Shown: positions 10,485 to 49,700 of the stretch, in pieces
Layout: each line of letters starts with the position of its first letter
Numbering within the stretch: position 1 is the stretch's first letter
Assembly (NCBI GenBank): GCA_965202585.1
Contig: OZ241826.1
Span: 17,918,001 to 17,982,000, forward strand
Origin: Thalia democratica
Lineage: Eukaryota
Length of the DNA: 64,000 nt
Direction: 5' to 3'
Translations under genes and position numbers: made by a program
Notes under the pieces: generated by a model
Databases searched by the model: none
Told to the model about the DNA's origin: nothing
What the model saw: only the letters and a program-made list of their open reading frames with translations

Positions 10485-10545
10485 ATGCATTATGACATCA
10501 CAATGGCAAAAGAAAGTGAATTTGTCACAAACAAAAGCTACAGGG
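10485..10545 (+). CDS. ANO: Candidate alternative first coding exon A0 of the anoctamin gene ((MHYDIT)MAKESEFVTNKSYR)
   Basis: In-frame ATGs at 10485 and 10503 (cacaATGg). Donor AGGG|gtatgt is phase 1, matching the acceptor at 17206. Two TGACATCA motifs lie at or just upstream. Confidence 0.55.
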
Positions 10546-13408
10546 GTATGTGTAAAACTTTTGTGGGTTTATAATATACCTATTTTCACATGCAACATTT
10601 ATACTATGTAATCTGGGTTGCTTTAATTTTAAAAATGTTCATAATTTGTTTTTTGAATTAGTAGAATTTATATAACTTCTAGAAGTAGTTAGGTTGTTTT
10701 TAGTCTAATCTTAAAGTTATTTTTAGCTTTTTGTTACCTTTTGATGTATTCATTTTTTTAACTGTAGATAAGTATACAGAACTTTTAATGAGTTTGAAAC
10801 CATTTACTGATAGAATGATAGTTAATTTTTACTATGACTTCAGAATCGTTATTAAAAGGGTATTTATTAGTTAGACAAAAGAGATTAAAATTATTTAGAC
10901 ACAAATAGGTTTAAAAACTATGTTTTAGATTTGTTACATAAATGATTTTAGATTTATATAATCTTAAGTTAAATTATATTACCTTATAAAAATTAAAATT
11001 GATTGTGCTAAACATGTATTTTAAAAACTTAATGTTTCAAATGTTTGTTTTTTTATTTTACACGGTATTTAAAAAATATTTTTTTATTAAAATTTTGTAT
11101 GTGTATTTAATTCAGACTAAAAGAGCAACTATTCAAAGTAGCTAAATTGTTTTATTTAAATAACGTACTATATATATTCAAAACTCAAAACTTTTAAACT
11201 TGTACCATAATAAACAAATTAGTTTCAACTTTGTTTATACAATATCATGGCTTTTAAACTTTAAAAGAATTTTATCAAAAACATACAAAACTTATCAAGA
11301 AAATTGAAAACAACTTTTATTCGTTTTTATCAAGGTTTAACCGTCAACTAAAATAAGTAAAAAAATATTTTAAGTATTTTAAAATATGATAAAGATTCGT
11401 CTTCAATAAGTTGCTGTTTTATTAGTTGTCAAACTTTGAAATTTTTTAAATTTAGCTATAATTTAGTTTAAAAATATTCAGATCACGTAGCACACAAAAA
11501 CGTTCAAAAATTTAAATAGCTTGAATAGTGACCTTTTCAAAGTCAATTGGTATTTATTCTAAGCTTATTCACAATTTATCTTAATCCAACCATATCAAAT
11601 GACAAAAGTTGTTCGAGTATATACAAATTTACTAGGAACCGGCCTAAAAATAAAGTTTTGAACATATTTATTTCTCTGAAATTAGCATTACCAGATTTAG
11701 AAAAGTTTTTAAATAAAATACACTAACACTAACTTTTCTCTTTATAATGATGTAGTTGTTTTGATTAAAATAGTTTTTTTAATGTATCAATGTTGTCAGT
11801 GAGTCAGTTTAATATATTGCATGTTTTAATTTTAAAATTAATTTAAAAAAGTATTTTGTTTTAAATATTCAGCCCATTAATTTTAATCATCGTTTGTTGT
11901 TATTTTTATCCGCAGCATACTAGTTTGAGCAATACTTACAAACTTTTGTTTCATTAAAGAATAAAGTTTTAATCTAAACAACAAATAATACTTTCTTTAG
12001 CCATACAAAACTTAGTTAGCACTGTATAAAAGTAATTACATTACAATGCATAATTGAAAATTCGTTATTTGAAACAAAAGGTTTAAGTTCGTAACTAGCT
12101 TAATTGAGAGTAGTAAAAGTTTGAGATTTGTTTATACAAAAATAAGGAGCAGTCGTTTATGCTTAGGAAAGTTTGTTTCTTAAATACTTTCAGTTCATAA
12201 TTACTAATGACTAAGTGGTTTTTATAAAGCTCGCTATGTACAATAGAAGCAGTTTTTATTATGAAAAGTTTTCTTCTAATGAAAGTATAATGTAGATACT
12301 TTAAAACTGTCTAAAGTTTTAGGTTTATAGTACATTGTATTATTTTCATTTACTATAAAAAAATTTTGAACTTTTGCTTACATAACTTTTTTTTACATAA
12401 ATTTCTTCGTAATTTCGATAAGCTCAGTTGGATTAGTTCTCCAAAACTATAGTATTTTACACTAAGAAAATTTCAGAAAAGCTTTTAGTTGTATTTTTCA
12501 GTTTGTCCGTTAGTTTTTAAAAACAACTAGTTTTAAAATTCAAATTTAAATATACGACATTAAAATAATTTCTTACTTAGTGTAAAACTAGCTAATAACA
12601 CTTTAGTACAAAACGACATAAGTAAAAAGGTTAACAGTCAATTTAGTTCTATGAAGCTGTTCAACAAACTTTTATTTTAACTTAAATTATTTTAAACTGA
12701 AAAGCTGTACATGCTGTTTAACGAGACAAAACAAAATAACTTTAAATAGTTTAATTTAAATCGTTTAAATTAACAAAAAGTATCAACAAACAATTAGAAA
12801 TTTTTTATAAGTTTTGTTTAAAATAAATTTCAAGTTTATTTTTGTCAAAAATACATTTTGTGCTTCTTAGCTTACAGGAGAAAGGTTTTTAAAGGCTCAT
12901 TAGTTCTTAATAATGTATAGTAAGTAAAATTTATGCTTTAAGCAGTTCTTTAGAAGTTATTATGTTAATTCTTAAAACTTTACTTTAGCTGTACGTTGTT
13001 GACCATCAATCAAAAATTAAATTTCACACTTGTTCAAAAAAAAAAAAAGATTACATGCTTTTTGTTAAAACGTTAATAGTTAAATGAACATCTACTGTAA
13101 AGAATTCCAGTAAATAAACAACAACTTAATTCTAAAAGTAATTGTTTTTAATAAACTAATACTTGATAGATATGAAACCAGTTTTCTTTAATTTAGTCTT
13201 CAGTTTGCTTTTAATACCAAACAGTTTAGCTATGGTAGTCCTAATTTTTGAAAATATCTCAAACAACATTAAATTTCTTACTCATATTTAGGAAGCTTTA
13301 TAATTAATGTCAACTGAACAACCCAAAAACTACTTCCTTGATGTTTTATGCTTTTATGATCATATAAAATAAATAACAACTTTTAAAAAGTAGCTTAATA
13401 ATGAAATA

Positions 13409-13649
13409 ATGTCAAATGAGCAACCGAACAAACTGCGCGGCACAAACGATGACGTCACTAACAACAATGACATCACTGGTGACGTAGTAACAGACGGTGT
13501 GACGTCACAAAACACCCGCAACGTCGTCCTCCCTCCCATAACGTTTCAATCTACGTTTACAAGGAAAAAATCCCCTAAAAGAAGAGCGCTGAGAAGGAAA
13601 AAATCGAAAGGAGGTGTTTTGGAGTTGGATGATGCAGCGACGAATAAAG
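13409..13649 (+). CDS. ANO: Alternative first coding exon A1 of the anoctamin gene (80 aa, polybasic RKKSPKRRALRRKKSK)
   Basis: ORF 13409-13654 is much more GC-rich than its flanks. Donor AAAG|gttaga is phase 1, matching the acceptor at 17206. Confidence 0.75.
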
Positions 13650-16600
13650 GTTAGAATAACAATATTTTTGTTTATTGTTTTACCATACTATGTTTAGACC
13701 GTATAAATAATTGTTATAGGATGCAGCGTCTACTAGCGGTTGGATTTATTTATTATTTTTAATTTTTTCACTGCTATTTTTTCGATCATGTTTAAATAGA
13801 GCATTTTAAAATTGAAATTATGTAAATGTCTTACTCTGTAACATTTTTTAGCTTAAAGTGTCGTAAGAGGGGTTTTGGGTTTAGATAATGTAGCAGTTAC
13901 AAAAATTTTATTGGTATCTTTAGTTTTTTAAAAGAGTTTTTACCTTATTAAAAAAGTAAAAAAATCAAGTGCTTGTTATCAAAACAAAAAACTCAAAGCA
14001 GTGATTACTAAAACTGTTTTGTGTTTTAGAACGTATTCTAACACTTTAATGTACTATTTGTATGAAATAAACAGAATTTTAGCTAAACCAGCAATTTGAA
14101 AAATGTTAAATATATAAGTTAATATTGTACGTAATTCCATAAACTAAATTTTTAAAAAAAACTGCACGTTTAGCTTATCAGTTGATTTAAATCAAATGCT
14201 AATTTTAAAGTTGACTTATATACTATGCAATGACTATTTGATAAATCAAAGTATAAGTACAGTAAAAAATCACTTAAAAAAATACTTATAACGTATGTTC
14301 AGCAATTTGTAATGATTGATTTATTTATTGCTTGTATTATTTATTTTAAATTTCTAACACTATTTTATTTTAAGCTTAAACTACTTATAAAAAAAACTTG
14401 TTTTTGTTCTATTTTGATAAATTTATCTAGTTATTTATACAAGCAGTTAAAAAAAAAAGAATAAAAAATGCTAACATCGAAAAATTTATTAATAATAAGA
14501 TCAATTACTAATGAGAGTAATAAAGTTTATTGGATAGCTAGCTTTTTATTAACCCACAAAACACTTTTATTTATGATAACGACTTTAAAAATTGCTATAG
14601 AAGATAATAATAAACCGACCTATATACTTGATCAGTTGTTATTAATACCTCAATACTTTAGTTTCGTGCAAAACTACTAACATAACTACTTGAAATTTAA
14701 ATTTAACAAAAAATGACCTATTAAAAGAATTTTATTTTGCAAAGTAATTTCAACTGGTAATTAAACGTTAATTACATCTTAATTATATAAAGTAATAAAA
14801 CTATCTATTGCTTAGTACAGTAATTAGTTTCGGATCATTAATCACTATTTTTAAAATCAAACTAAAATAGGTCATATAGTATAGTAGTTGTGTTTAAATA
14901 GATGATACACAAGTTTTCTTTTGTTTGTCTTTTTTTTTTTTGAAATTTGTTTTTGCAAGTTCTATTGACAGTAAGTATCAAATCATTTTAGCATTTAGCA
15001 GATTTTAATTTTTTTGTAAAGTTTATATAGGTAATGTAAACTTGAATAAATTATTTTTAAGTTTTGTTTTTACTTAGGAAAAATTATAAACTCACTAATA
15101 TCACCACTACAAATCTCAGCACTTGTAAACTTGCGAGTTTCATAATGTTTTGAATATTTTTCTCATTACAGTATTTAATAGTTAAAGTATGCCCTTCCTT
15201 GAAATTTTTAAACTTAATTAATTTGAGTTTATTAATATCTAAATCAGTGTTTAATATTTTATCTGCAATAACAATATAATATAAATTAAACTATGTATAT
15301 TAATTTACTTTAAGTAACTTATATTTTTAAACAGTTCATTACACAGTTATCGATATATTTTTGCACACAATAGCCTATTTAAGGTTTTTTATAATAAAGT
15401 CTGTTTTTATAAAATTTTCGGACTACTTTTTTAAACTAAATTAAATTAGTTTATATTTGATTTAAAAACATAATCCTAATTTTTCTCACAGGCTTCAGAA
15501 ATTAAGCAAGTTAATACTTTTCAGTTTAATATATATTTACTTATAAAAGTTGTATCAAAAGTTTGAAAAAGTAATCACTAGGCTAAATTATTTTATTGAA
15601 AGTGTTTAAAACTTAACAAAGTTTATTTTCTTAAGAATTATAATGCATAATCACCAGGTAAACATATTAACACCTTAAAGCAAGCATTGAAAACAAACTC
15701 AGTTTGTTGTTAAAAGTTTAAGTTTATTTAGTAACAAAAGCTTCAAATGTCAGGTTTATTTAAGAAATGTAATTGTTTAAAATCCTTTACTTTATAAATA
15801 AGAATCCTTTATGTATTATATTTAAACAGTGTAAATATAAAAAAAACATATTTGTATATATATGAACTCACGATGAAAAGAAAAAAACTTTATTTATAAC
15901 ACTACAGTTTTGAGTATCTATACTGAAAAAACAAAATTAACACAAAATAAAACATAATAATTACGAAATCCAGTAATAACTAAAAACAAAAAATATGGTT
16001 TTAAACTATTCAAAAATCATACTATATAACAACTTAATTTTTAATCTTCTAGAATGTTTAAATTTGTTATTTATGATATAATACACTTAAATAATTGTAA
16101 CTGTTGTCGTTAAGTTTTTATCATTTTATCGTGTTTTGTTTGTTTAATGTTAATCTTGTAAAACACTTAACTATATTTGTTTACAACATAATTACATTTT
16201 GGTTTTTTAACTTCTGGTAACTATCTACAAGTAGGTTTATTAGAAGTAAACTATTATTTACCGTAGTAACTTCAAACAGTTTTAATGTAAAGTTGTATAT
16301 TTATTAAAAATTTGTTAAATTCTAAGTAGTTGCCACAATTTTTACCAATTGAAAAAGGTTGCTTTTAACAAATATGAATAAATATTTAAATGAATACGTT
16401 TGTGAAGTATAAGAGTTTATAAAATTACTTATTGATTAAAAAGCAATTGAGTTTGTTAAGTTTAAGTTGAATCGGTTTTAGTAATACTGTCTCAATAAAA
16501 GCAAACTTATTAGTCGTAAAAACTTACGAAACCACTAAAGTCATACCCACTTTAAAAAGTTATTTTCTCTTAACAAACAAGTCTTTTCAGCTTTTGCAGA

Positions 16601-17205
16601 TTAAAACCGAAGATAATGAATATTTTTCGAGTGTGATTTTTGCAAGCTTTATAAAGTTTGTGTTTGAGGCGTTTTGTGTTTTATTTGCTTGACAATTCTT
16701 TTGTTCTTCAAGTTTGTTTTTTACGTGATGTTTCTGTGGTTTTAGTTCGAAATTTTAAGATTTTCACACTCAAAACTACAATATTATGTAAATTTTGACG
16801 TTACTATGAAAAGTTTAAATTAAGAAAGTTTTATAAGTTGTATAAGTGCTTTTTTTTCAAAACAAAGTTAGTTATCAGCAACTTAAAACTATCATTTAGA
16901 TTATTTCAAAATAAAAACACTTGAATTCTTGTATTTAGCAATTATACTTTTAATTCTTTACTTTGTAAATTTTTAAGTCTTAACTTACACACTAAAAGAC
17001 GCTCATCAGATAAAATTTGATTTTTTATTTTTACCTCATAGAAATTTTAAATGATCAAGAATTTTTAATCTAGTAAAGATATTAGGTTTAAAATAAGCGT
17101 TAATTTTTGTTTAGCTTGGTAGTTTTGAATGTAAATTAATTTCTTCAGATATTATTTATTATATAGTTTTTATACTCGGTTTGCTTAATAATGCTTTTTT
17201 TACAG

Positions 17206-17253
17206 ATAATAATAAAAAAGTACCAAAAGAAGCTTCTGAGTCTCCTTATTCAG
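17206..17253 (+). CDS. ANO: Shared N-terminal exon (DNNKKVPKEASESPYS), 48 nt, phase 1-1
   Basis: ttttttacag| acceptor and CAG|gtaaaa donor; open in the required frame. Confidence 0.7.
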
Positions 17254-18083
17254 GTAAAAAAATATAATTTAATTTGTAATTATAAGCTAAATGATTTTTT
17301 TAATTTTTCAAATTAATGTTAATATTTTTCAGTAATCATTTAAGGCAGTTTGTTTTCAATCTTTTAGATTCTTTCAAATCGAAGTAAGAATAAATAGCTT
17401 TTAGAGTTAAAAAAAGTTATTTAAGTATGTTAATTTAAACTTAATAGCTGAAAGCCAAAAGCGTAATTTTAGACTAGGTATAGTTTTGTATTAAGTTTAT
17501 ACTAGTTACTTGTTCAATTATAAACAAATTCTTATCTATAATACTTTTTATTCACTTTAAATTTGAATTTAAAGTTTATTTTTACTCTAAAATAAAAATG
17601 ATAGCTAGTTGGCACTTATTTTAAACAAAAGGTTGTATACTTGTAAAAATAATATAAAACTTAAAAATATTTCATGACTTAAAATATTGCAAAAAGTAAA
17701 AATTTGCAAAAATAAAAACTTTTGTAAATTAAGTTAGAGTTTTTATAGTAATTCCTATAGACTAGACTAAACAATATAAAATAGTTGTAGTTAAATTACA
17801 AATCGCATGTTATGATTTTACTTACTGAAATGTAACGATTTTACCGGTACGTCATTAATACTTTTTTAAAGCTTTATTGCAGTATTTTGTAATTTCCATG
17901 TTTTTAGTCGAGATTAATGAGCTTGTAAATCGACTTAAAACTCTTTTAACCTTTTTCAGTTTACTTTTTGAATTTATAGTCTTTTATTCAACGCATACAA
18001 ATACTTTTTTTTTTGTTTGTTGTATTCTGTAAAATTTATTTAGAATAGTTATCGGTCTTTATTTACCTTGAAATTTTTTTTAG

Positions 18084-18128
18084 ACAAGAGAAGTCAAAAC
18101 AAAAAGGAAGATAAAAAACGTCTTGTAG
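18084..18128 (+). CDS. ANO: Shared N-terminal exon (DKRSQNKKEDKKRLV), 45 nt, phase 1-1
   Basis: ttttttttag| acceptor and TAG|gtaaat donor; open frame. Confidence 0.7.
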   Translation, partial: TREVKTKRKIKNVL

Positions 18129-18419
18129 GTAAATAAGCAGGATTTAATTTAAGCGAAAAATATTTGTACTCTTTATTAACTAGCATAGAAATAAATATGA
18201 TGATAAACACTCAATTGAAATTAATTTTTTAAGTTAGTAGGTTCTAAATTTTATAAATCATTTTAGAAAGGCAGCTTACAACTGTAAATAAAGTAATTCG
18301 AGTTATACCTTAGAAATCACTTTAAATAAAACCAAGAGCTAAAACCATTTAAGCTTAAATAAAAATAAACAACACTAGTAACAGACCAAAATCGACATGC
18401 GTTTTTATTTTACTTACAG

Positions 18420-18513
18420 AAAAAGACGAGCCCCAGGAAAATTACGGGTCAACAGAAATACCTGACGACCTAAACAACCTCCGTAGTAACGGATTAGCCC
18501 CTCCTAGTGTTAG
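18420..18513 (+). CDS. ANO: Shared N-terminal exon (EKDEPQENYGSTEIPDDLNNLRSNGLAPPSVR), phase 1-2
   Basis: tacttacag| acceptor and AG|gtttgt donor; GC-rich, open frame. Confidence 0.8.
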
Positions 18514-18894: not shown

Positions 18895-19063
18895 GTACGC
18901 GGAACCACAGCGGGAATCGATTCCCGTCGAAGCTGTCAGGACGACGGCGTTGGGGGAAGCCGCTAACGTAATCGTCGCGTCATCCATACCTAATATGACG
19001 TCACTGTACAACAACGGCGGCGTCACGGAAGAACTGCCGAACCATGTCGTCGAAGAAGACTCG
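18895..19063 (+). CDS. ANO: Shared N-terminal exon (YAEPQRES...HVVEEDS), phase 2-0
   Basis: cacag| acceptor and TCG|gttagt donor; lies within the supplied ORF 18869-19084; GC-rich. Confidence 0.85.
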
Positions 19064-19351
19064 GTTAGTATTCATAATTTTTGATGTGTTTGAATTTTTC
19101 ATAGTCTATTGTTTTAAGCAGTATTCGTTTCGGTTACCATGAAACAAACGCGCCATCAATGATAGATAAAGAGTTTCACCTAAATTGTCTCGAATGCTTT
19201 TGTTAATGGTCGTGTGGTGGATTTCTTTATTTAATAATCTAATTAAATGAGAGTGATTATTGAAATGTCAGTATTTTAGTACTGATCCTACATGTTATAA
19301 ACATAAAGCAAATAAAATATTTTGAACATTAATCTGTTATTGTACTTGATT

Positions 19352-21720: not shown

Positions 21721-21801
21721 GGTGGTAAAGTCAATGAGGCGTACATAACGGAGAAAAATATGAAAGAAGAAAATATTGACATGGCCAAACTGGAAAAAGA
21801 G
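21721..21801 (+). CDS. ANO: Shared N-terminal exon (GGKVNEAYITEKNMKEENIDMAKLEKE), 81 nt, phase 0-0
   Basis: tcttttttag| acceptor and GAG|gtatgt donor; open frame; links 19063 (phase 0) to 46714 (phase 0). Confidence 0.8.
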
Positions 21802-28902: not shown

Positions 28903-29001
28903 TCTGACGTCATCAAATAGTCTTTCTGACGTCACACGTTATATCTGACGTCATAACACGTTACCTCTGAGTCCTACGTTCACACTTTCCTTCTGACGTC
29001 A
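28903..29001. promoter_or_regulatory. Cluster of four perfect CRE palindromes (TGACGTCA) plus one AP-1-like site
   Basis: TGACGTCA at 28905, 28927, 28946 and 28994, and TGAGTCC at 28968; ends 5 nt before ATG 29007. Confidence 0.6.
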
Positions 29002-29006
29002 CAAAG

Positions 29007-29277
29007 ATGCTTCAGTTGCTAGGCAGCGGCACGGGCATGACCACCCACAACACGATCGAGAGGTCACGGTCGGGAGGGGGGTGGCACCAGAACGAGGGGA
29101 ATTCCCACAACCACAGCCACGAACACCACTGTCACCATGGAAACAACAACAAGAGGAGGAAGATGTCTTCTGGGGGTCAGGGGAGGAGAAACTCTCAGGT
29201 GTCGAGCAGAAGGAATTCTAGGGGAAGTCATTCTAGTAGTAGGAACAGTAGTGGGAAGGAGAAACTGCTGGAGGAGG
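29007..29277 (+). CDS. Candidate alternative first exon B (His/Ser/Arg low-complexity ORF from 29007; second frame from ATG 29137)
   Basis: GC-rich island directly after four TGACGTCA sites, with strong donor GG|gtaaga at 29278. That donor is phase 1 for the 29007 frame and phase 0 for the 29137 frame, so the link to the anoctamin body is unresolved. Confidence 0.55.
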
Positions 29278-35212: not shown

Positions 35213-35296
35213 ATGGAAGGGGGTGGCAAATCGTTTTTTCATTGGATGTTTTGCTGTCACTGCCTGAAAAACTACGAATCCTACAGAAATAACGAG
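35213..35296 (+). CDS. ANO: Candidate alternative first exon C (MEGGGKSFFHWMFCCHCLKNYESYRNNE)
   Basis: ATG at 35213 (taatATGg-like context aataATGg), 28 open codons, GAG|gtaatg phase-0 donor. Too short for the supplied ORF track. Confidence 0.65.
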
Positions 35297-35389
35297 GTAA
35301 TGACGTCACAATAGTTACTTTATTATTCGCAAAATTACAGAAATAACGAGGTAATGACGTCACAATAGTTACTTTATTGTTAAATGCGA
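35282..35389 (+). repeat. 54-bp tandem duplication spanning the exon C donor
   Basis: tacagaaataacgaggtaatgacgtcacaatagttactttatt at 35282 and 35336. Confidence 0.9.
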
Positions 35390-38022
35390 AATTACAAGGC
35401 AGTCCTGTAATGGTAAACTTCTGATTTCGTAAATATCGGTAGTGAATTGTTTTAAACTTTTTATTTGTAATAAACAGCATTAAATTGCATGATTTTAAAG
35501 GAAAGTCGTATTATTTTAATATTGTAAATGGAAATATTAAAAGCTTTAAAATTATGAGTATAATTAATCACAAAATTTAAAACAATAGTATTGTCAGTAT
35601 CATTGTTGCAAAACTATACTACTAAACTGCACTTGAGAACATAAATTAAGGCTTTGTTATTAAAAAATAAATTTATGAAGTTAAACTAAAGTTATGAAAT
35701 ATAAACTACAAAATCGAGATTTATTCAGACTTTTATTAAAAGCTTACAAACTGATCGCATTATTAAAAGTATTGTACAATTTGATTTATTTTAATAAAGT
35801 GTGGTATTTTGTCTGTTTTTTGGTTGAAGCATTCTTGATGTAAACAGATTACAACAAACGTAATACTTTCACGTGCTTTAATGCTTTAAACTCTGGTGTT
35901 GTAAATGTTTTGAACTTTAAAGCCACTTACGTTTTAATTCGCCCAGAATCGATAAAAGTAATTTCTCAATCGAGACTTTTAGAAATGTATTGTAGAACAA
36001 GTTGGAAATCTTACTGCAATACTTGCGGTATTAATGACGTAGTATTGTTTACGTAAAATGATCGTAGACAGAGTTTAATTAAGCTCCTCTTTGTACCACA
36101 TGTGTTTTTTTCTTGTTATTGTATAAAGAATTTATTTCTATATTAAACTTTAGAATGTTAGAGTCAAAAATATGATCATGAGATACGTAGGCGACACTTT
36201 TGTTTACAAGTTTATATATTTTATATCTTTTTTATCATTCAAAGTTTTTCTTATTTTGATTTTATATTTACGAGGACTGTACGACAAAAAGTGTTTTTTT
36301 CAAATCACTAACTTAAAGTGAATAATCATTATTGTTCCAATGATCAATTTTCTAGACTGCTTGAAATTGATAAACAATAAAAATATTGTGGAAGTACGAA
36401 TAAAGGTTAAAACTTTTAGGCAGTGCTAAATAGTTGTTTTACTATAAAAACACAATACAATACTGTTTTTTGTTTTTAGTCGTTTCCTAAAGCTGTTAGT
36501 ATAATAACTAAATCAAAATTAAAGTTAAATGACTTATTGTAAAGTTTGCTTAAGGTTATTATGTAAAAAGTTTTATGCATTAAAATATATTAGCTTAAAA
36601 TTAACATGAGTAGTTCTCAATATTGTTGTAGTAAGTTAGATAAAGTTAGTTTAAAGAAATGTATATTTTTATTAGTTTAAAAAAATAATTGAGATTTTTA
36701 TAATTAATTAATAGAACTAAAAGAAGAATATTATAGTTTAAATAAAGATTTACTTTGGTTTTGTTAAAACTTAAAAAGAGAATAACTGTTGGATTGAAAT
36801 TTTATTGATAGCAAAAAAAATTAAGTTGTAGAAAAAAAAATTCCGTTGTCATAAAAGTCAGTTGCTTTCAATCAAAAATTAAAGTGTATTCTAATTACCA
36901 AATCAATTTTACCCCAAAAATTGAACATATGCAAGTCTTTAAAGTTTGTTCGTTTATAGAATTAGCAGTAGAAAACTATTCTTAACTATGGTATGTTAAT
37001 ACTTAAGCAAATAGATAATAACAAAAAAAATTAAGTTTAAATAAATGCAGTGAAGTTTTTAAATCTATTGTTGATTTCGTAATTTAAATTTGTATAAACT
37101 TTCTGATGTTTGAAAACCATTTCTGTAACAATGATTTTTTAAATCTTAGCCAACTTTTGATTAAAAAAAAACTTCACATAAAGAATTTTACACATAGGTG
37201 TCATTTACAATAAAAACACTGTATTTTGTAAAATATTTTTTTCACAAACTAGTAGTTAAACTTTATATGCTGCTAGACAAAACAAAAAATTATTACAAAA
37301 TGTTGCTCAGAGGAGTAGATTATTGTTTTTACATCTATTTTTAGAATGTCCCTTATTTTTTGTATTACTACAGTCAGTTTTTATTAAGACAGTTCCAAAA
37401 TATATAGATTTTTTTTAAATTTAGACTAAGTTTTCAAAGGTATTTTATTGTTCAGATTAACTGGGTTAAAGTTTGAGTGCATTATTATTTTTCAGCTAAT
37501 TGAGTTTTAATTCTCGGCTTAGTGTCATTAAGTGCTTTGTAAAACAATTATAACTTCAAAGTTAGAAGGTTAAAAAGTCTGGGTAGTTAAATACTTACAA
37601 GATACTTATAATGTTTTTTAAAGCAAATTGTTCATTTTTTACTCGCTTATTTATTATTAAGTTTAATAAGTTTAAGTTTTAAAGCCTTTTAAATACATTA
37701 TTTAACCAATTTTTTATCAGGCATGTTAAGTAAAAGCTTATTAGAAAAATTATAGCTCAAATTTAATCAGAGGAGTTTTAAAGTTTAAATGTTTTTAAAA
37801 CTTGCTAGTTCTAAAACCAACGATTATAAATTCATAAAATTTAGCGTTGAATTATGACGTAGTCTTAAGAACTTTTTCACAGAATTAGAAAACTGACAAA
37901 AACTATCTTTATGTATTGTGTGCTTTAAAATGCATTTTGTCTTTGTTTAAATGTCGTTTGTTAGTTTTTATGTTTAAACAATTTGTATTTTTTGTGTGAA
38001 ACCGTAGCTTTTCAAGCTAACA

Positions 38023-38445
38023 ATGGATTCTAAATTAAGCGTAAAAGACAAGAAGAATGAAAATATCGAAAACAGAGGATTACTTTTTCCAAAAACAAGT
38101 AATCAAAAATCAAAAAGCTTCAGTTTTACAGAGGATAGAAAATTGCTTTCTCCAAATGAAATTTACCAGAAATCAAGAAGCTCTAGCTTTCAAGAGGATA
38201 GAGGTCTACTTTCTCCAAATATAACTAATCAAAACAAGACAATGGATTTTAAAACTAGCGTAAAAAGTAACAAAGAAAGTATCGAAAATAGAGGATTGCA
38301 TTCACCAAATATAACCACTCAAAAAACAAGAAGTTTTAGTTTTACAATCCACATAGGTGAACATAATAAAGATAGCAAAAAATTGAAGCTAAAACAAACT
38401 GCACAAGTTAAACAAAGAACAGAGACGCCATTAGAAAGGGCTGAG
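38023..38445 (+). CDS. ANO: Candidate alternative first (or cassette) exon D, 141 aa with internal repeats
   Basis: Supplied ORF 38023-38523. GAG|gttatt phase-0 donor falls where the translation turns into intron-like F/Y-rich sequence. An in-frame AG acceptor at 38007 is also possible. Confidence 0.65.
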
Positions 38446-40430
38446 GTTATTTTTTATTGTTTTTTTAACTTAATTTACTACTTCGTTAACAACTTTTTTT
38501 ATCATTGTTTAAAAACGGTGTAAAAACACTTTTATAAACTATATTTTAGAGTGCTCTATATAACACACAAAATGTGCTACAAAATAGCGATTATTGATAA
38601 GTAGTTAGTTTAGATAAATCCTAACTAAAATAAAAGTGAACTCTAATATAACGTTCATGGAACTTCTAATAAAAAGCCGTGTATTTCAACTTTTTTAAGA
38701 AATTTACTTATCTTAGGTAGGTGTTCTTCTAGTGTATATACAAGACTTACCTAACTTTACAACTAAAGTTGTTATGTTCGTTACTAAATGAATAATTTAG
38801 AACTTTTGCATGTTTGTATCACGTCTAACGTGATTGATTATAAAATTAAAAACTTATGGAACTTCCCAAGACTGTGTTATGTTTATTGAGCCTTATAAGT
38901 GTAATTATATCATTATTAGTTTTGTCTCAGGTACTTTTGTTTTCATGACATGAAAAAAACATATGTTGTATTTGTACTGTGTTCCTTTTATTTTAAAATA
39001 GTAACGCTAAATGTGTAGTAATTGTTTTTTATAGAAAATAATTCTAACAAAACAGAGAACACACTCTTCAAGTTTGTTATTACCTTAATGTTTGTTGCTG
39101 TCAATATAAATTTTAAGTCACATAACTTTGAATATTGTAAAAGTTGATTTGTTGGATTTTTTAATCAATCTGGTTTGAATAAATTCTATCCGAATGTTTA
39201 TTTATATTTATTCAGATTTATTTTATTATTAAACAGATTCGAAAGTAGTCAGCTTTATTGAAGTTATTGAAATTGGTTTTAAAAAATGTGCAAAACTAAT
39301 TAGATCAAACATAGTTTTAAGAACATACGCTTACTCTATAAACTAAGTTAATTGATTATTGTTATATAAGTTTTCAGTTGGCTGTAATTCAAAAATTTGT
39401 GTTTTTTAGGTCATACTTGATTGACTGAAAATTTATACTAGAAAATTATATTACCAAAATTTTTATAAATTAAATTAACCAAGCTAAAAATATTTTAAAC
39501 TAAGTTGTATAAAATATACTTTGAACTATATATTTCTATGTAAATGGTTTTCACAAACCTTGATGTGTTAACATTTATTAAATTCACAATCATATAACAA
39601 TGCAAAGACTGCTAAAAATTTTAATTTCCGGAACTTTTAGAGTGTTGAAACTTTTATATATAAGTGTTGAACTTGTTTGACTATTTATCAAAAAATATAT
39701 AGTTTATCGATTGCAAAATTTTTTTCAACGCTATTTTCTTTCAACAACAATAAAAAAATACCGTTTTGTTTCATGCTTTTTTTTTCTACTTATTGTGTAA
39801 ATAAAAATTCCTCAGTGAACTTTTAGTCTTATAAAGCACTCTGATTTTGCTTTTCAAAATAATAAAAAATAGGTTGTAAAACAGTTTGCAATGACAGATA
39901 AATTTAAGTTGATTTACTTGAAGTTATTTTTATATATTTCCTGCAATATAAACTCCTTAGTGAAATATTTTTTAACCTACTCGACTTTCTTATTTTTCTA
40001 GTAATAAACTTTATTGTCATATAAGTCTAAAACTTTTTATTAGTTCTGCCCGTGAAACTTTAGCAAACGCCAATCAAATCTTATTGCTCTCTTTATATCA
40101 AATCTTTGAAATCTGTTTAAACGAAATCATATTTAGAAGTCTAGTTTTCGGATACTTACTTATTTAAATGGTTATTATTTAAAGTAAAATATAATTAAAG
40201 GTTATTTAAATATGTTAACCAAACTTATAACAAAATCCAAATCAAAGTACACTAAAGCTTTTTTTCACATTTGTAACTATGGAATATAAAATGTGACGTA
40301 ATTTTTTGGTTAAAATTTTTCATCAAAACATTTGAGTCTAAAAAAACTTTATACTGTGAGTTTGCTTTACTGAAATCTCAAGCAAAATTGCTAGTGTAGA
40401 AAAGTAAGATAACAAGCAAAAAATTAAAGT

Positions 40431-41366
40431 ATGTCGACTAACAACTCAAGTACTGATGTAAAAGAAGTAGACGAAAAGGAGTTTGAAAATGTAGTCACAG
40501 AAAACAAAAGCTTGTCAGCGGAAAATGACAATCTTTTACAAAATAATTTGAATTCTAACGGGAGTAATAAAAGTGAAACCAGCGTTTTGAATGAACAAAA
40601 GGACGGAAACAGGCTTTCAATTTTGCAAAACGAAAATTCATTGAAAGTACCAGATTTGAAATCATTCAATAACCAAGACACAGATGTTGAAAGTACTGAA
40701 AGCGGTATAACAGCAGGAAGGAGTAAGCTCTCGAATAGTTTCAATAACAGCCATGAGAGCTACATGTCTACGATTTACAGCAAGAGCAAAAGTTCCATTT
40801 TAAACTCACAAGTAGTAGAAAGTATTAAACGAAATCGACTTAATAAAGAAACTTTTGGTAAAAAATTGGCTTCTATTAAAGAATATGGGAGTAAAATTAA
40901 TCTACCGAAGAATATTTTTACGAGGAAAAATACAGTTTCTCCGTTAGGAAATGACAAACATGAAAACAATACAGATACAAAATTAAGTGTAAATAGTATA
41001 AAAACAGAAAATGTTACAAAAAGTGATTCTAAAAGCAGTCTAGTTAAAAACGATCATTTAAGCAACGAGAGTTTAGCAACCAAAGATAGTTCTATACCCC
41101 CAGAAAGTGACCGTTCAAATAATTTAGTGTCAAGACATTCTCAACACATACTAAACTGGGCTTCAAACTCAAACCACAAACTGAACGTTGCCGAAGTCTT
41201 CTCCTGGCAGAACTTCCATAAAAAACTGGAAGGGTTGAAAAATTTGAGAAAGGGTTCTACTCTTTCGTTGCCTGAGCGAGTTGTCAGGTTTTGCTCGATG
41301 CCTTTCGTTTTAATGCAAAATTCATTTAGGAGGCGTGAAAGCGAAACGTCGTCGCAGAAAGTAGAG
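40431..41366 (+). CDS. ANO: Candidate alternative first exon E, 312 aa Ser/Asn/Lys-rich, predicted disordered
   Basis: The 322-codon ORF is the longest in the window and unlikely by chance at this AT content. GAG|gtaact donor is phase 0. Confidence 0.75.
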
Positions 41367-42145
41367 GTAACTTTTGTGAAGTTATTGATTGAAAGTTGAA
41401 AAATTTTTTAGATGGTTAAAAATTTATAATATAAAAACTAATTGTTCAACTATGAGGTTTGGTTGGTGTTAAACTGCTTAAAACTTTAAATCTTAAAATC
41501 ATAAAAAACACAGGTAGCTTACCTGAAAATATTGATTAAAAGTTGAAAAGTTCAAAAAATGTTTAAAAATTTGATTACATAAAAAATTGTTTCTAAAATA
41601 TACTTCTGGAAGTTTGTGAAAATATTGGTTAAAAGTTGTATTCTCATCTGTTTAAATGTCCTTTTTACAATTTTTGTTGATAATTTTTGAGTTTACTTTT
41701 CTGAAAGTATTGATTCAAGTTGAAAACTCATTTTGTTATCTTGTCACTTAAACGAATTTGAATAACAAATATTCGCATAAAACTTCTGTGATCGCATAGA
41801 AATTATTAAGTATCTAAAAGTAGTGATATAATTTGAAAAGTTCAAAAGTTGTTTTTATATGATAAAGTAGAAAATTGTTATATATTTTAAAGTTGTGAGA
41901 TTTGCTTGTTTTTTTTTTCTTTGTTATTACTTGTATTTGAAACCTGAAAGTTAACAAAACAAAAAACAAAGGAAACTTTTCTAAAATATTGATTATAAGT
42001 TTAAATTTTGATAGGTTGTTGGAAAATTTGTTCGTTTAAAGTTTTATCGGTAAATTGACAACTAAGTTCAGTTTTTGTTCAATTTCTGTACATTGTGGTT
42101 ACGGAGATAACTTTGTTGAAAAAATTGATTAAAGTTGAAATTTAC
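41367..42145 (+). repeat. Degenerate repeats of the intron-start sequence after exon E
   Basis: About six copies of (ac)ttt..gaaa.tattgatt.aaagttgaaaa at ~41370, 41520, 41610, 41698, 41975 and 42110. Confidence 0.55.
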
Positions 42146-44044
42146 TGTTTTTGAGGACTTATTTTCACAACTTGTGTAGAAAGAACTAGATATATAAAAA
42201 AATTAAAAGAATCGTCATGGTAGAGAAAATTTATATTAAAAACCTTTTGTCATTGAAAGTTGTAAAAAGCTCAAGTAACTTAACTGGTATACTAAACTAT
42301 ATCAAAACTATGTTACTAATTTATTAATGAACATAATGCTGTGTTTGTTTATTGGCAACAACAAGTGAAATAAAACAGTGTATTTGAGATTGATTGAAAA
42401 TATTAAACCTTTTTGATGCTAGATCGAAAATACAAATATTATCTCTGAACTTGTATAAAAACTATAAGTTGGTTTGTTACATGAAAACTTCATGAGTTTG
42501 AGTTTGAACTTGTTTTTTTCAAATGACTTACAACTAATAAAAACTTATACAGGAAACAAATTTGGTTACTAATTGTTTATTAACTATATTTTTCAATAAA
42601 AAAAATCTAAAAATCGAAAGTAACTTATCAGAATTCATCGATTAAAATTGAAGTTTTATCTTTAATTTAAAACTTTATTTAAAGGCTTTGCCGAAAAATA
42701 GCAGTTATATAGTATATTGACAGATGGTGAAAAAATTCATTCAAATGTGACTTTTCTAACTAAAAGTAGATACTTTAGTTTTACGGTGAGAACCTATTAA
42801 GCTAGTTAGTTTTTATGAAACTTATTTGTTTTTTATAAAGTTGCCTTCAGCAATTTACAATAAGTAAGTTTACAAATAGTTTTTTTATCAAATTTATAAA
42901 CAGTCATATACAAAAATCAAGTTATCTATTTTAACAGCAATAACATTAGTATAATTATAATAAATTACTTATGACAATTAAATAAATAAACTAAACACAA
43001 GAGCCTAAGGTAGTTTTTCTAATTCAAACGTTAATTTTACTTATTTGTTTTAATTTACCTTTGTGTTCACAACTAATTAACTTTATGCAAAACATTGAAA
43101 AAATGTATCGTTTTGTTCATACAATGATGAACTGTTAATTAGCATTGATTTAGAATGGAAGTAAAAAAGTTATTTGTTCAAAGTTATTGTTTAAAGTTAG
43201 TATTTAAAATTTTAGTTCCCTTATCGTAATATTTCTAAATTCAAATTGTTTTTGTTCATTAAGCTAATTTATACAAAGTAATGTTAATAATTCAGAAATA
43301 ATAAAAAACTGTGGATGTATTACTGATTGCTTTTTCTTTTGGGTTATTGAAGACTCAAGTATTTCGTTTAAAATTCATCCATAAAAATCTATTCTAAATT
43401 GGATTTTTTCTATTGATATTTGAACTTGAAGTTTAAGTCCGCTTTGTAATTTGATTATAAAATGCATAGTTGTTTTACTTTGTAATGATATTATACACGG
43501 TAAACTTTTTAACTTATATTACTGTAGAAAGCAGCTTTAAAGCTTAAATTTTATTTAAACTTTTACCTACAATGGTTTATGCTAAATTAAAGGCATCAAT
43601 AAGTTTTTCTAAACGCTTAGTTTAAATAAAATTACTCACGGTAAAAATAAATTTTTCAAGCAAAACAAAACTAGAAGCTATTTCTTTTAACTTAACTAGC
43701 TTTTTATTTTGGTTAATTAATTTTTGGCTGTAAAAGTCAGCTAAATGTTAATTACGCAACCCTGAAATTTTATTTTCTTTTTCACCAAAACAAACCTTTG
43801 TTCTCTCGCTTAATCCTCCCAACAAGAACAGCAATACTCTTGCATACTTATATATGTATGTGTACGCACGGTAGGGTAAATCAATAAAAAAGAAAAACTT
43901 TACAAAAAGAAACTGTAAAGCGGAAACTTATATATCACTGCTGTTGCATTGAAAAAGTTTGCATTCGAGAAAATTACAGCTACTGTGTTATTTTGCTCGA
44001 TTTTTGAGTAAAACACAAAAGTTGTTTGTTGTGTTTTTTCTATT

Positions 44045-44101
44045 ATGTTCTGTAGATGCATCAAAGTTTTTATTGGGATATCTAGCTACTACAATGATGA
44101 G
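44045..44101 (+). CDS. ANO: Candidate alternative exon F (MFCRCIKVFIGISSYYNDE as a first exon, or internal exon 44056-44101)
   Basis: Strong GAG|gtaaga phase-0 donor, in-frame ATG at 44045, and a polypyrimidine tract with ctgtag| acceptor ending at 44055. Confidence 0.55.
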
Positions 44102-46713
44102 GTAAGAAATTTAAAATTTGTTAATTTAATAAACAATATATGATTGTTTATATATTTAATTTGTTGTTAACAAAAAAATATTGTCGAAAACTTGCTTTTT
44201 TGATCAAATGAGTTAATTAGCTTGATAAGAATACTATTAAGTAAAAATATTTGGTTTGAAACAGTTTTTTTTTTAATCAAACTTGGTTGTTTAAACTTAG
44301 CTAACTTTTTAATTACTTATTTTAATTTTTTATATTGTTAATTGAACAAAAAATTGCTAGCTTAAAAAAATTTAATAGTTGTCTAAACTTAAAAATCAAT
44401 GTTTGCAATAGTTATTTAACAGTATGTTAAAGCTGATATAAAAAGTTTATTAAAGTTTTTTTACAACAAAATCTTTTTAGCAATATTATTACAGTGAGTA
44501 ATACTTTAAAACATTTAATTTTATGTTTAGATTAAACTTAGAAACTAAAAATATTACCAAAACAGACAAACAAATATAAATAAGAACAAATGTCTCAAAT
44601 GAATTAACTACTTAATTGTTTTTACATAAAAAAGAAGAAAATCTATATTATATCAACAATCAAAATCATTACGTTTTAACTAACAAATTTAAAACTAACT
44701 CAAAACTAGTTTAGTTGTAAAAAACATTTTAAGTTTCGAAACAGAAACAAATTGTTCATTATGTGTTTCATTAAACTTTAAACATTGTACTACAACTTTA
44801 AGGATACTACTTAAAACTGTAACAATTTAATTTTAACACACTAACTAACTTTTGCAAAATGTTTTTCTTAAGTAGCTTTGCGTTCTCTAAGTTTATTTTT
44901 TATGAAAAATTAAACCGGAAATTAGCCTACTTTGATTTTTTCATTGAATTTTTAAAAGTGCTAGTTTATTTTAAAACTCATTAGTTATTAGTGCTATGTA
45001 TAAGTACATTAAACTTTTTACGAGTGATACTAAGGACTACTATAACGATGAAGTTTGTTTGTTTATTATTTAACATTTAGATGTTTAAGTACTGAAAATA
45101 TAATACCATTGTTTTAGATTTTCAGTAATGAAGTTTTATGGCATTTTTCAAATATTTGTTATCTCTTTAATAACAGTTTTTTCTTTTTAATTACTAATAA
45201 GCTGTTTAAACTGATTAAGACTTGTAGAGGTCAGGCTTTTAGATTCTTTCTAAGCAAGAAACATCTACTAAAAGATTAAAAAATGCTTTAAATGCAAAAA
45301 AGCTCGATTGCTTACAACTTTCATTCATATAAAGTTTAACTTCTTTATGCTAATTATTAGCCAAGTTTTCTGGTTTGTTTAACTTTAAACTACTTAATGG
45401 GTGAAATAAACGATTCTCCTTAGAAGCTTATTTTGTAAACTATTATTTATCTTATTGGCTTACAGTGGAATGAAATAGAATGTTTTGCAGTAAGTTGTTA
45501 CCATACAAAGTTATATTAAAAGTTAAAAACATACAAAGAAACTGTTGTAAGAAAAGTTCAATTTACATACAAACTTTGTCATCGTTAAAACACTATTTGG
45601 ACACTGTTGTTAATAATATATTTTACATTACTTGTTGAGTTACTTTAAAATCCTAATGGCTTCTTGCTATTACTATATACATAGCAATGAGTCAAAAATA
45701 TGTCGGTTGTCTAAACCTAATAATGTGCAAGTTTTTCATACTTTGCAGACAGTGAGTATTAAAGTGTGATCACTTTTCAATGAGACTAAAAAGTTTAAGT
45801 TGTATAACATAACAGCTTATTTTAATTAGCTTGGTATTTAACTTTGTTATAAATAAATTGTTTCTTGTATGTTAAGTTGTAATCACATTTTTAGTATTTG
45901 ATATATAGCACGTAGCTCAAAGTAAAATGTTTTGTATAAAACCTAGACTACTTTTAAACTTTATTTTGTTGCTATATACAACTTGTGATTATGTAATATG
46001 TTAAAGTATTTCTAAACGCTAAATTTTAAATACACATTTCCTACTAAATGTTTAATAATATGATAGTTCTTACTTCAAAGACAGAGTGGCAAGATTTTAA
46101 AACTTAGCACTTCAATAGAAAAAATGTTTATTAGTGTTGACTTAAAAACTCATACTCGAGTAATGTTGAGAAACTTGTTTCTTTTTTGAATCTTGATAAC
46201 TAGGTTTATGTTAAAGCTACTTGCTTACCCATAGTAACGCTAAGTTAAACATTACGATGTTTGAATTTTAATTGCTGCAAACTTTATGCTACATTATGTT
46301 GCATTATTACGTCACATCGCGCTGTTTACAAGTTGCAGTGACGTCACAAACAGTGGTGATGATTGCCTGTGTGCGCTTCATTTTTTTTTTGTTTTTATTA
46401 TTTTATTTATAGAAAAATTAGTTATGATCGTAACAATAAGTTAATTTTTTTAAAAAACTTACTTATTTTAACAAAAGTTCATGCGATTAGTTTGATTACG
46501 TTTCTTCAACGTTCTTTGTTTTGTGATTTGAAAATATCCTTCTGACACGCTATATAACATACGCCAAGCCAAATGGTACGCTTCTCAAAAATTTTTTTTT
46601 TAAATTTTATAAGCATACTGAATTTTCCCAAACAGAGACTGAAACCAACTCTCTACATTTTTGAAGCTGCTAGTTTTATAAACTATATGTAACAAACTTA
46701 CACTTCATAACAG

Positions 46714-49700
46714 AGGTTGAAATCAACGTTGCACTTCAACGATGGCCAGCGGAAGATCGATTTCGTCATGGCCTACATAGAAGATGAGGACGAAGAGGAG
46801 GAAGGAGGTTCTGTTAATTACCAGAGGAGGCAGGTTTATCAGGAGGCGTTGAAGAAAAAGGGACTGGAACTGGAGATCGAACCTAAAGAAGTGATTAACT
46901 GTTTTGTAATATATATACAAACCATAGCAGCAAGTTTAATGTTGACTTGAGTTGTTTATTAATTTTATGTGCTTGAAATTGAAGCTTATACTAACAAAAT
47001 TGTAATTGTTACTAACTAACTTACAGTTTCTTACAAACTTTGAGGTAAGGCTGCATTGAAAAAACAAACGTTTTTAATGTTTTGTAGGAGAACAGCAGTG
47101 CTTTTTTTCAGCTCTAAAAGTTATAAACTGTTATAGCTTATGAGTTCAGCAATGTTTTGCTGTCAACATAAATAGACTAGTTCAGCAATGTTTTGCTGTG
47201 AGGTAAGACTGCATTAAAAAAAAAACGTTTTTTAATGCTTTTTTTAGCTGTAAAAGTTATAAACTGTCATAGCTTATGAGTTCAGCAATATTCTGCTGCC
47301 AATATAAATTAAATATACTCTATAAGTTAAACAAATTTAGATGATTTTAACTATTACAGGAATCCCAAGATCAAGTAACGTGTTTTGTGAAGATTCACGT
47401 TCCAAAACCCATCTTGTACGACTATGCTGAGAAAATGAGAATGAAAATGCCTCTGAAAGAACAAAATGTATGTTAAATTTTACATTATAACTCAAAACGC
47501 GTTTATGCTATACGTAATATGTGCTATTACGTACAAATTTGACTTACTTTTAATGAGCACTTCATTACTTTAAACCAATCAAACTGAGTATCTTCTCCGA
47601 TATAATACGTTAGAACACAATAATTTTGCTAAGGATATTACTGATGCTTTTTATAAACACAAACTAGGTACAAGTAAAATCATCTTATCGCTCTTAGTAT
47701 TAAAAGTACAAAAATTATTCAACTAAATACCAAAAAAAACAAATTTATAAAAACAGGTAGACGACCATATGGAAGAAGGAATAGATCAGGAAGAAATTTG
47801 TGATCTTTTGAGTTGTAACACAGAAGTTAAATGCATGAATTGCTTCAAACTCAATAATCATGTACTACAAGAAGCCGTTAGTTAATTTAGTTGCTTTACT
47901 TTTGTATGTACAGAGAACTTTAATTTATGATGATAGTTTTCACAACAACGTAAAATTTAATATGCTTTCAGTTTATAAAATGTAGTTCTGTAATGGCTGT
48001 TTTTAAACTTAGTTTAATGGTTTTGTACTATAAAGTTATAAGGTTAAAATTTTTGAGCTACTTAAAACTAATTAAACATATGTATAGACAACTAGTTTTA
48101 TTAATTTGTATAACCTTTATTTATACCAAAAAAGAATTGTATTAGTACTTAATAAGTATTTTATTAGCCAAATATTCAACGCGAGGTCGTAAGTTTCATA
48201 GCAGTACTAGATAGTAGTTGGTAATATAACTAAACAATAGAAATCTAGGAAACTTGCTTTTAATTGTTATGCTTAGATATAACAACCTAAAACTTGATTA
48301 TCTGTCGTACGGATTATCTGTTTTATGGATACACGTAGAAGAAATAATGTAAAACTATTAATTTATTATATTTAGACTAAAATGTTTATTCAAAATTTTT
48401 GTCTTTTTTACGATTAATATTTCTCTGAGAGTTTTTGGTTTTAAAAAGAGCTCCTTGCTAAAAAGAAATACATATCAAATACTTCTTTGTTTATTAAAAT
48501 TGCTGACGTTTTAATGCTTGCTATGAAGTTTAAACAAAGTATTTAGCTCTATACAACAAAGAAACTTATTTTTTACTAGCAATTAGTTTTTTGTCAAAGT
48601 GACCAGAGTTAATGATAGATATTAGAAAACAGGTAGCTTTAATGTAATGTTTAGTATGTTAGACTTTTTAGACTCGTTTTGAATTTCAAAACAAAATGCA
48701 AAAGCAAAAGTCATGTTTTTTGCATTAGCTTAGTTTATAATATCAGAGTAGTTACCAACTTTAATACGTAATAAACAAACTTTTATTTGTTACGTAGGCA
48801 AGAATCAGAAGAGAAAAGAGAGAAGTTAGTTAGAAACCCGTTTTATTTAAAAACTTGTACTTTTATTTTCATTTGGTATACTTTTTAAAAAACTTGTTAT
48901 TTCAAGAGAGAAGAATACTACACTGCGGAATTTGTGAACGAGAAAAAACACTTCTTCGATATCAATGATAATGAAGACTTCTTTAGCGATGCACAAAGAT
49001 CTAGAATCGTAAATAAATATATATATATTTAATTTTTATAAGGATTTTCATCGATTAAGTTAAAGATTTAAAATTTACCATAAAACTATTTTTCTATCTT
49101 TAAAAAAAAATTTACAACATACAATAACAGCTTTTAGAAATTTTCAATGATTTTTTTTAACCTAATCAGCATTTTTTAAACATGTATTTAGTTTTTTGTA
49201 AGAACTTAAAAACAGACTTTTTAGTTTTAAAAATGTATTTTTTTATGTGTTGGACTCTTAATAAACAAAAATAGTTATACTTAATTTTGTTTCTACTTTA
49301 TATCAGTAGCAACATTAGTTTTGAATAGTAAAAACAATTTAGGCATACAGAGTACTGAATGAGACGAGATTCGGTCAGGAAAAGACAGCAGTTGGAATTA
49401 CAAAACTCATAAACGATGGAACATATGAAAGTGTATTTCCATTACATGATGTTAGTTTGTATTAATGCAGTAATATATATATTTATTTGTTTAAAAAACT
49501 TATAAACGATGGAACATACGAAAGTGTATTTCCGCTTCACGATGTTAGTTTTTATTTGCATTACATTAAATATTTGTTTCTAAATAGTTGCACAAAACTC
49601 GTAAATTATGGAACTTGTATATTGTATTTCCATTACATGATGTAAATTTGCATTATTATACTTAAAATCGAATGTAAAACTTATTACCCTGTCTTTAGTA

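Follow-up and report, generated by a model that had tools for sequence, protein, structure and literature searches.

Candidate start exons in a row upstream of a TMEM16F-like anoctamin gene in Thalia democratica

Introduction

How many different beginnings can a single gene of the TMEM16 (anoctamin) family give to its protein? The question is raised by a stretch of 64,000 nucleotides (nt) of the Thalia democratica genome (GenBank assembly GCA_965202585.1, contig OZ241826.1, positions 17,918,001 to 17,982,000 of the forward strand), referred to below as the window and numbered from its first letter. This AT-rich window (25% G+C) carries an anoctamin gene on its + strand, the exons of which, from 46714 to ~61150, match the Pfam families Anoct_dimer and Anoctamin. 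According to the original prediction, derived from the bare letters, about seven alternative first exons upstream of position 46714 deliver unrelated N-termini to this common core.

Our analysis favours, with modest confidence, a row of at least four alternative first coding exons, each with its own control region, that would be joined to the constant exon at 46714. Four to five of the proposed units are credible as predicted first exons: a chain of exons beginning at 13409 (226 amino acids, aa) and the units named here U35 (28 aa), U38 (141 aa), U40 (312 aa, or 186 aa with an inner donor) and, probably, U44 (19 aa). Two units are doubtful: the long frame of the one at 29007 is phase-incompatible, and the one at 10485/10503 is without support beyond its sequence. 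Judged by substitution rates, three units (U35, U38 and the 5′ part of U40) are kept as coding sequence by purifying selection in relatives. The relatives were met as short contigs, assembled from marine metagenomes (several in Tara Oceans records) and derived from related planktonic species, with no annotated relative among them.

The gene and its first constant exon

The first constant exon (46714..46890, + strand) encodes the beginning of the cytosolic dimerisation domain at the anoctamin N-terminus. Its acceptor reads ...CATAACAG|AGG and opens a phase-0 frame, as foreseen in the original prediction, and this frame matches PF16178 (Anoct_dimer) from profile position 2 (profile 2-51, E 7e-12). 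A second match to PF16178 is located in exon 52146-52304 (profile 189-221, E 2e-8), and the exons at 53189, 55537 and 56931 match PF04547, the ten-helix membrane domain (E 1e-13 to 1e-16). The best relatives of the gene among solved structures are chains of Anoctamin-6/TMEM16F (E 3e-15), ahead of Anoctamin-1. Exon 46714-46890 aligns to mouse Anoctamin-6 (TMEM16F) from residue 61, which is the start of the ordered N-terminal domain. In addition, the translations ...WNNVIEIV... (57578-57793) and the stretch at 58739-58942 look, by eye, like the motifs of acidic and Asn Ca2+-binding residues in helices 6-8. By its matches in Pfam and among solved structures, the window gene is a TMEM16F-like anoctamin.

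The acceptor of exon 46714-46890 is kept in the contigs L004, L005, L006 and L012, and the ratio of non-synonymous to synonymous substitution rates (dN/dS) of the exon is 0.02. Genomic fragments of many animals also show an acceptor a few residues ahead of the constant-exon motif, so the intron position before this exon is old. A search of representative proteins with the 59 aa of the constant exon returned short genomic fragments only, and no full-length or transcript-derived protein; the word-index search covered short entries, its length filter leaving long isoforms aside.

Organization of the gene differs in length in a more distant relative. In its contig L014 (3626-7215) the gene is far more compact, with ~2.6 kilobases (kb) between the constant exon and the first membrane exons vs 6.5 kb in the window, and the first-helix exon pair (53255-53313) was matched only once there.

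Donors, frames and phases of the upstream units

Upstream of the constant exon we found units that start with ATG and end with a donor, arranged in tandem before the one shared, phase-compatible acceptor. All five predicted donors, at 21801, 35296, 38445, 41366 and 44101, read GAG|GT and are in phase 0. GAGGT occurs at only 14 sites within 8-46.7 kb, and five of the 14 are the unit donors, each with Glu as the last codon before the RLKS of the constant exon. The identical last codon in all five units and in relatives fits one common junction constraint.

Four of the units consist of a single exon on the + strand: U35 (35213..35296), U38 (38023..38445), U40 (40431..41366) and U44 (44045..44101). 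The fifth donor closes a chain that can be entered from two alternative first exons. One of them, E13 (13409..13649, + strand), ends in phase 1 at the donor AAG|GTTAGA, and the other, E10 (10485..10545, + strand), starts with ATG at 10485 or 10503 and ends, also in phase 1, at GGG|GTATGT. Both continue through the same shared exons on the + strand, which are 48 nt (17206..17253, phase 1 to 1, AG|...|GT boundaries, open frame), 45 nt (18084..18128, phase 1 to 1, open frame), 94 nt (18420..18513, phase 1 to 2) and 169 nt long (18895..19063, phase 2 to 0), followed by the last exon of the chain (21721..21801) with its phase-0 donor GAG|GTATGT. As far as the reading frame goes, the predicted passage through five shared exons into 46714 holds, both frames staying open throughout. 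The lengths of the N-terminal extensions, counted from the first in-frame ATG, also agree with those proposed: 19 aa from 44045, 28 aa from 35213, 141 aa from 38023, 312 aa from 40431, 166 or 160 aa from 10485 or 10503, and 226 aa from 13409.

In 64 kb of the same composition, chance would produce 0.03-0.07 open frames of 141 codons and <1e-6 of 312 codons, and the long frames are thus not due to chance. Taken alone, frames of 19 and 28 aa are at chance level, with hundreds to thousands of such short frames expected; 33 ATG-started units of at least 15 aa with a GTRA donor were counted. As short frames are so common by chance, the two short units need other support, which comes from their mutual similarity and from relatives.

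In an all-against-all BLASTP comparison no relation between the units was detected, except between U35 and U44. The N-termini are thus unrelated for most of the units, as had been stated, with the exception of the mutually related units at 35213 and 44045. A Pfam search disclosed no domain in any upstream unit.

An in-frame stop lies just upstream of the ATG in U35, U38 and U40, and also, as read by eye, at 13409; in U44 it is placed 11 codons upstream. These stops bear on the possibility of internal cassette exons, in which the units would follow a single first exon one after another or in various combinations, that exon being either 13409 or a non-coding leader from an island at 28905-29300. 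Such use would be permitted by the phase-0 compatible start and end of all units, by an AG located 7 nt before the U38 ATG, in frame in the window and in the contig L007, and by good donors (AGG|GTAAGA) in the 29-kb island, which is rich in motifs resembling the cAMP response element (CRE) and has no convincing coding frame. The stops directly upstream of the U35, U38 and U40 ATGs speak against it, however, and in the contig L010 the corresponding AG, at 11 nt from the U38 ATG, is out of frame with a TAA behind it, so that internal coding use of U38 is not conserved. Furthermore, U40 and U35 are without a conserved usable acceptor: the AG ahead of the U40 ATG has no pyrimidine tract and a phase-0 join from it meets a stop, and the AG ahead of the U35 ATG is missing in L007. 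At none of the three units found in relatives was a conserved in-frame acceptor seen. Internal use would also leave unexplained why, in every species, each frame opens with a conserved ATG. We consider internal cassettes very improbable, and the favoured reading as first exons is followed below.

Conservation of the long units U38 and U40

The check on relatives that had been suggested together with the prediction was performed on the metagenome contigs, and 35213-35296, 38023-38445 and 40431-41366 were found to be kept with coding constraint.

U38, characterized by internal repetition and by the motifs LLSPN and KS[KR]SFSFT, ends at the donor GAG|GTTATTTT and was found in three species. All three begin with MDS..SV at the start of the frame, with an in-frame stop about five codons upstream, indels between species are whole codons, and the end ...ETPLERAE|GTTATTTT is identical in all of them. 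Against the close relative the dN/dS is 0.28, and against the distant one it is 0.45; each of seven natural alleles of the close relative is open. The unit is single-copy in the genome of the window. A scan of JGI metagenomes with the U38 alignment gave no match.

Two observations concern U38 itself and its surroundings. Within the exon, a module of ~37 aa (MDS.SVK...NRGLL.SPN.TNQKS[KR]SFSFT) is duplicated, and both copies are kept in the three species. Six of six contigs of the relative, derived from different samples (L007, L008, L013, L015-L017), break 600-670 nt downstream of U38, corresponding to ~39000-39100 in the window, which suggests a repeat at this place in the relative's genome.

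U40 is rich in Ser, Asn and Lys and ends at GAG|GTAACT within an open frame of 323 codons. Its first 199 codons are present in the contig L001 with 81% identity and a dN/dS of 0.31, together with the same ATG and upstream stop. It is also single-copy in the genome. A second candidate donor in phase 0, AGT|GTAAAT at 40988, is conserved and placed ahead of a stop in the relative's copy, and U40 may comprise 186 aa in some species or forms. Neither a look-up in the ESM Atlas, which gave nothing above chance, nor a scan of JGI metagenomes disclosed a match to U40. In DNA sequencing runs, a heterozygous A>T change was observed at 41369, position +3 of the 41366 donor (GTAACT/GTTACT); T at +3 seems to be tolerated, because U38 has GTTATT in all species.

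It can be asked at this point if some of the upstream frames stand outside the anoctamin mRNA, as separate small genes or as orphan or non-coding transcripts placed inside or ahead of a long first intron, with the 13409-21801 chain as one candidate and U38 and U40 as single-exon genes. The frames of U38 and U40 continue 25 and 10 codons past their donors, a stop closes the U40 copy of the relative, and no Pfam, atlas or database relatives tie the unit peptides to anoctamins. The run search described below, made with a mostly intronic query, turned up no RNA run containing U38 or U40, and read-through past 21801 stops after four codons, with AATAAA nearby. On the other hand, all five units share the rare GAG|GT, always in the only phase compatible with 46714, and the exon ends ...ERAE|GTTATTTT and ...NNE|GTAATG are exactly conserved. 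A 1-nt indel between species behind the U38 donor indicates that the sequence there is not coding, and in a distant relative a short unit is likewise placed shortly before the constant exon. Separate genes are unlikely on this evidence, and we return to the units as first exons of the anoctamin.

The short cysteine-rich units U35 and U44

U35 encodes the 28-aa peptide MEGGGKSFFHWMFCCHCLKNYESYRNNE and ends at the donor GAG|GTAATGACGTCAC. In the syntenic contig L007 its ATG, frame and donor are kept (MEDGNSFFHWMFGCHCLKNYKSYRNNE|GTAATGACGTCAC), with one in-frame indel and a dN/dS of 0.10. Similarity extends beyond the exon, as the 32 nt behind the donor, including TGACGTCAC, are 94% identical to the relative, vs 55-70% in introns. 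In the window a tandem duplication of 54 base pairs (35284..35391, + strand) copies the U35 donor together with the adjoining CRE; this segment is single copy in the relative.

U44, the last unit before the constant exon, encodes the 19-aa peptide MFCRCIKVFIGISSYYNDE and ends at GAG|GTAAGA. A comparable unit, MMDFLCWCLGLRCYSNLKQYRNDE|GT, was found ~700 nt upstream of the constant acceptor in the contigs L004 and L014 of a more distant relative, which end in or hold the constant exon. U44, U35 and the peptide from L004 (2924-2995) are mutually similar beyond composition-preserving shuffles (p 0.0006-0.002). By this similarity U44 belongs to a conserved family of short heads of the form F-C-x-C...Y-x-N-[ND]-E, with two copies in the window. 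At the DNA level, the U35 and U44 regions share no segmental duplication. Another candidate in L004 (3509-3571) was rejected, being not similar to the family of short units.

The chain at 10-22 kb and the ambiguous unit at 29 kb

The chain from E13 is based on six exons with open frames and canonical splice sites, and on codon scores. In E13 the best score falls in the frame of the original prediction, and in the 94-nt exon the scores favour the chain frame. E13 coincides with a CpG peak and has CRE-like motifs inside the exon at 13450-13507, while the region's strongest CpG cluster is at the exon 18895..19063, with TGACGTCA at 18996. No relatives of E13 were found. At E10 two TGACATCAC motifs are present, at 10468 and 10493, and the unit as a first exon is doubtful.

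The unit proposed at 29007/29137, U29 (29007..29277, + strand), is GC-rich and ambiguous. Its long frame from 29007 could not be sustained, ending in phase 1 at the donors 29277 and 29298 and being thus incompatible with 46714, whereas the 47-aa frame from 29137 (CACCATGG) ends in phase 0 at AGG|GTAAGA and could join it. All three frames are open here because the stretch is GC-rich, and codon usage does not separate them. U29 is single-copy in the genome. Directly before 29007, four perfect TGACGTCA sites are clustered within 97 nt (28905..29001, strand not assigned), which gives this segment a promoter-like appearance.

Sequences preceding the units and choice of the 5′ end

The segments preceding U38 and U40 are conserved above their surroundings. 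The U38 upstream region (37855..38022, + strand), a putative promoter or 5′ untranslated region, starts with TGACGTAG 168 nt before the ATG, and the last 163 nt ahead of the ATG are 80% identical to L007 vs 55-70% in the surrounding intron. The corresponding region of U40 (40293..40430, + strand), interpreted in the same way, starts with GTGACGTAAT; these 138 nt are 92% identical to L001, while the synonymous substitution rate (dS) of the adjoining exon is 0.27. Both flanks are opened by a conserved CRE-like TGACGTA[AG], 137-168 nt before the ATGs. Conserved flanks of this kind are the expected look of exons with their own control regions.

CRE-like motifs are abundant throughout the window, with 18 sites of TGACGTCA vs 0.23 expected and 22 of TGAC[GA]TCAC vs 0.19. 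They often take the form TGACGTCACAA[TA], sometimes immediately before an ATG, and are located in or next to 13409, 18895 and 35296, in the cluster of four that precedes 29007, and, within a block shared with L005 and L006, 375 nt ahead of 46714. A search of the literature gave no relevant record of TGACGTCA as a promoter motif in tunicates. A two-codon unit ('ME') at 31421, preceded by a CRE-like site at a distance of 160 nt, was rejected, as it is not conserved in L013.

The same architecture could also be served by another way of selecting the 5′ end, in which a spliced leader would be trans-spliced, on one or a few long primary transcripts, to an AG shortly before the ATG of a unit, and the donor of that unit would then join 46714. 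An AG does precede the ATG by 7-11 nt in U38 (three species), by 2 nt in U40 (both species) and by 15-18 nt at 13409. The one before U40 is situated in a purine-rich stretch without a pyrimidine tract, and L007 has no counterpart of the AG that lies 18 nt before the U35 ATG. Moreover, the 140-170 nt upstream of U38 and U40, from the CRE-like motif on, are conserved well above intron level, which is more than an acceptor needs. Trans-splicing as the general means of selection is rather unlikely for these reasons, and separate control regions remain the preferred explanation.

Proposed mode of use and evidence against it

In the favoured reading, transcription would start at one of several control regions in the 36 kb upstream of the constant exon, and the donor of the first transcribed exon would be joined to the constant acceptor at 46714 in phase 0. 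Units further downstream, having no usable acceptors, would be removed with the intron. The products would share the Anoct_dimer domain and the ten-helix core and differ in cytosolic tails attached where the folded domain begins. Predicted heads comprise short Cys-rich ones, candidates for palmitoylation, a repeat tail with RSFSF/KS[KR]SFSF and LLSP motifs of phosphorylation type, and long disordered tails rich in Ser, Asn and Lys. Such tails would govern location or regulation of the protein and not its transport mechanism.

Several observations weigh against this reading. The first is the AG 7 nt before the U38 ATG, which in the window and L007 would permit an in-frame join from an upstream phase-0 donor. 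CRE-like motifs are also present in constant exons (52171, 52202, 54873, 59619, 61176 and 61195) and next to the stop region, and for this reason the motif is a lead for promoters but not a proof or a specific mark of them. The upstream chain and E10 are without comparative support, and both could belong to a separate gene that ends at the stop four codons past 21801. In U40, L001 has TAA (728-732) where the window has AAA (~41030), at about codon 200; this contig has a coverage of 1, and the change may be a sequencing error or a real truncation. A mixed three-row profile of U29, the 3′ part of U40 and the constant exon returned constant-exon fragments only, and no relative of U29 or of the 3′ third of U40, a weak blank given the reduced sensitivity of the profile for the two rows other than the constant exon. 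Heterozygous sites in the 3′ part of U40 are five non-synonymous and two synonymous, vs one and five in the constant exon, and constraint on this part is accordingly weak. Lastly, a search of sequencing runs with 38000-47000 gave two DNA runs only; with a query of 9 kb that is mostly intron, RNA runs containing nothing but short exons may escape notice. Contigs of the DNA runs on 40900-46899 cover introns and exons alike, and database matches to the units are all genomic open frames that read on into introns. Since the runs found are DNA only, the junctions, start sites and promoters considered here are predicted ones.

A wider proposal is offered more tentatively, and we place it somewhat short of even probability. 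In pelagic tunicates, one TMEM16 of scramblase type may be served by a conserved array of at least five promoter-specific start exons, which would supply two Cys-rich heads open to palmitoylation, a tail of phospho-type repeats and long disordered tails. The choice among them would perhaps be made in part by spliced-leader trans-splicing at acceptors before the ATGs, not by promoters. If true, this array of five or more would be the largest array of start exons known for the TMEM16 family.

Comparison with known systems

The original prediction likened the locus to those of protocadherins, UGT1 and plectin, as a design with variable first exons and a constant body. In the protocadherin alpha and gamma and UGT1A loci, tandem exons with their own start and donor, and with no acceptor, face one constant acceptor, and promoter choice selects among them. 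This exon layout is shared by the window locus. The variable exons of protocadherins and UGT1A are paralogues for a diversified functional domain, the ectodomain or the substrate-binding half, respectively. This part of the comparison fails, since the units of the window are mostly unrelated low-complexity tails, and one 'unit' consists of six exons in a chain. In plectin, many unrelated first exons result in short N-terminal heads that direct one body to different places, and here the comparison is closer: the window locus more resembles the type of plectin or of TMEM16B, C and F, with unrelated heads on a constant body. An N-terminal variant of the channel subunit CACNB2 has a palmitoylated Cys-Cys head, and U35, U44 and the L004 unit, with F-C-x-C, resemble this di-cysteine head; palmitoylation and targeting are predictions for them, and the protein families differ.

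Within the family itself, alternative starting exons are described for TMEM16A (segment a, alternative promoter), TMEM16B (A/B), TMEM16F (V2) and TMEM16C (three N-termini), and the N-terminus of human TMEM16C changes surface expression (PMC8835819, PMC9611045). These alternative first exons of mammalian TMEM16A, B, C and F belong to the same family as the gene studied here and affect the same protein site, the cytosolic tail ahead of the conserved N-terminal domain. The mammalian genes have two or three variants each, whereas four to seven candidate units, including two paralogous Cys-rich heads and tails of 141-312 aa, are recognized in the window, from DNA alone. The locus is a larger instance of a known design. 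Many animal genes have alternative first exons, and the TMEM16 family is already known for them.

Should the proposed use of the units prove right, a single gene would furnish its TMEM16F-like protein with at least four or five cytosolic heads. Such a set would make a natural series in which to follow the role of the disordered N-terminus of a scramblase or channel in targeting, lipid anchoring and control by phosphorylation. It would also mean that diversity of start exons in the TMEM16 family can far exceed that of vertebrates, with no new principle involved.

Other conserved and CpG-rich segments of the window

Upstream of the constant exon, a conserved non-coding block with TTACGTCAC and GTGACGTCAC (46266..46356, strand not assigned) is located 360-450 nt before the acceptor and is the sole upstream match to L005 and L006. 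This pair of motifs could belong to a further start site, for a form beginning at Met19 of the constant exon, or to an enhancer. An open frame over the conserved CRE block (46286-46429) was rejected as coding, being broken in L005.

Several conserved islands were detected in the long intron. The segment 30150-30440 is 83-91% identical to L013 vs a background of ~60%, is non-coding, with stops in all six frames, and holds the palindrome AGATAAGAAATTCTTATCT, made up of two inverted GATA-type sites. Further non-coding islands at 31388-31537, 33517-33680, 33905-34343 and 34591-34737 show 80-90% identity to L007 and L013, with identical runs of at least 40 bases and homeodomain-like TAAT cores. These islands (31388-34737) are probably enhancers. 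Two unique CpG-rich islands of the long intron, 22300-22800, with GTGACGTCACAATG at 22587, and 25300-25900, with 38-41% G+C at 25.4-25.8 kb, revealed no convincing frame or donor. An Rfam scan of the window gave no match.

At the beginning of the window, minus-strand open frames of 97 and 68 aa (4714-5192) are present, together with a cluster of TGACGTAA at 2.8 kb (2760-2850). They probably represent a neighbouring gene and its control region.

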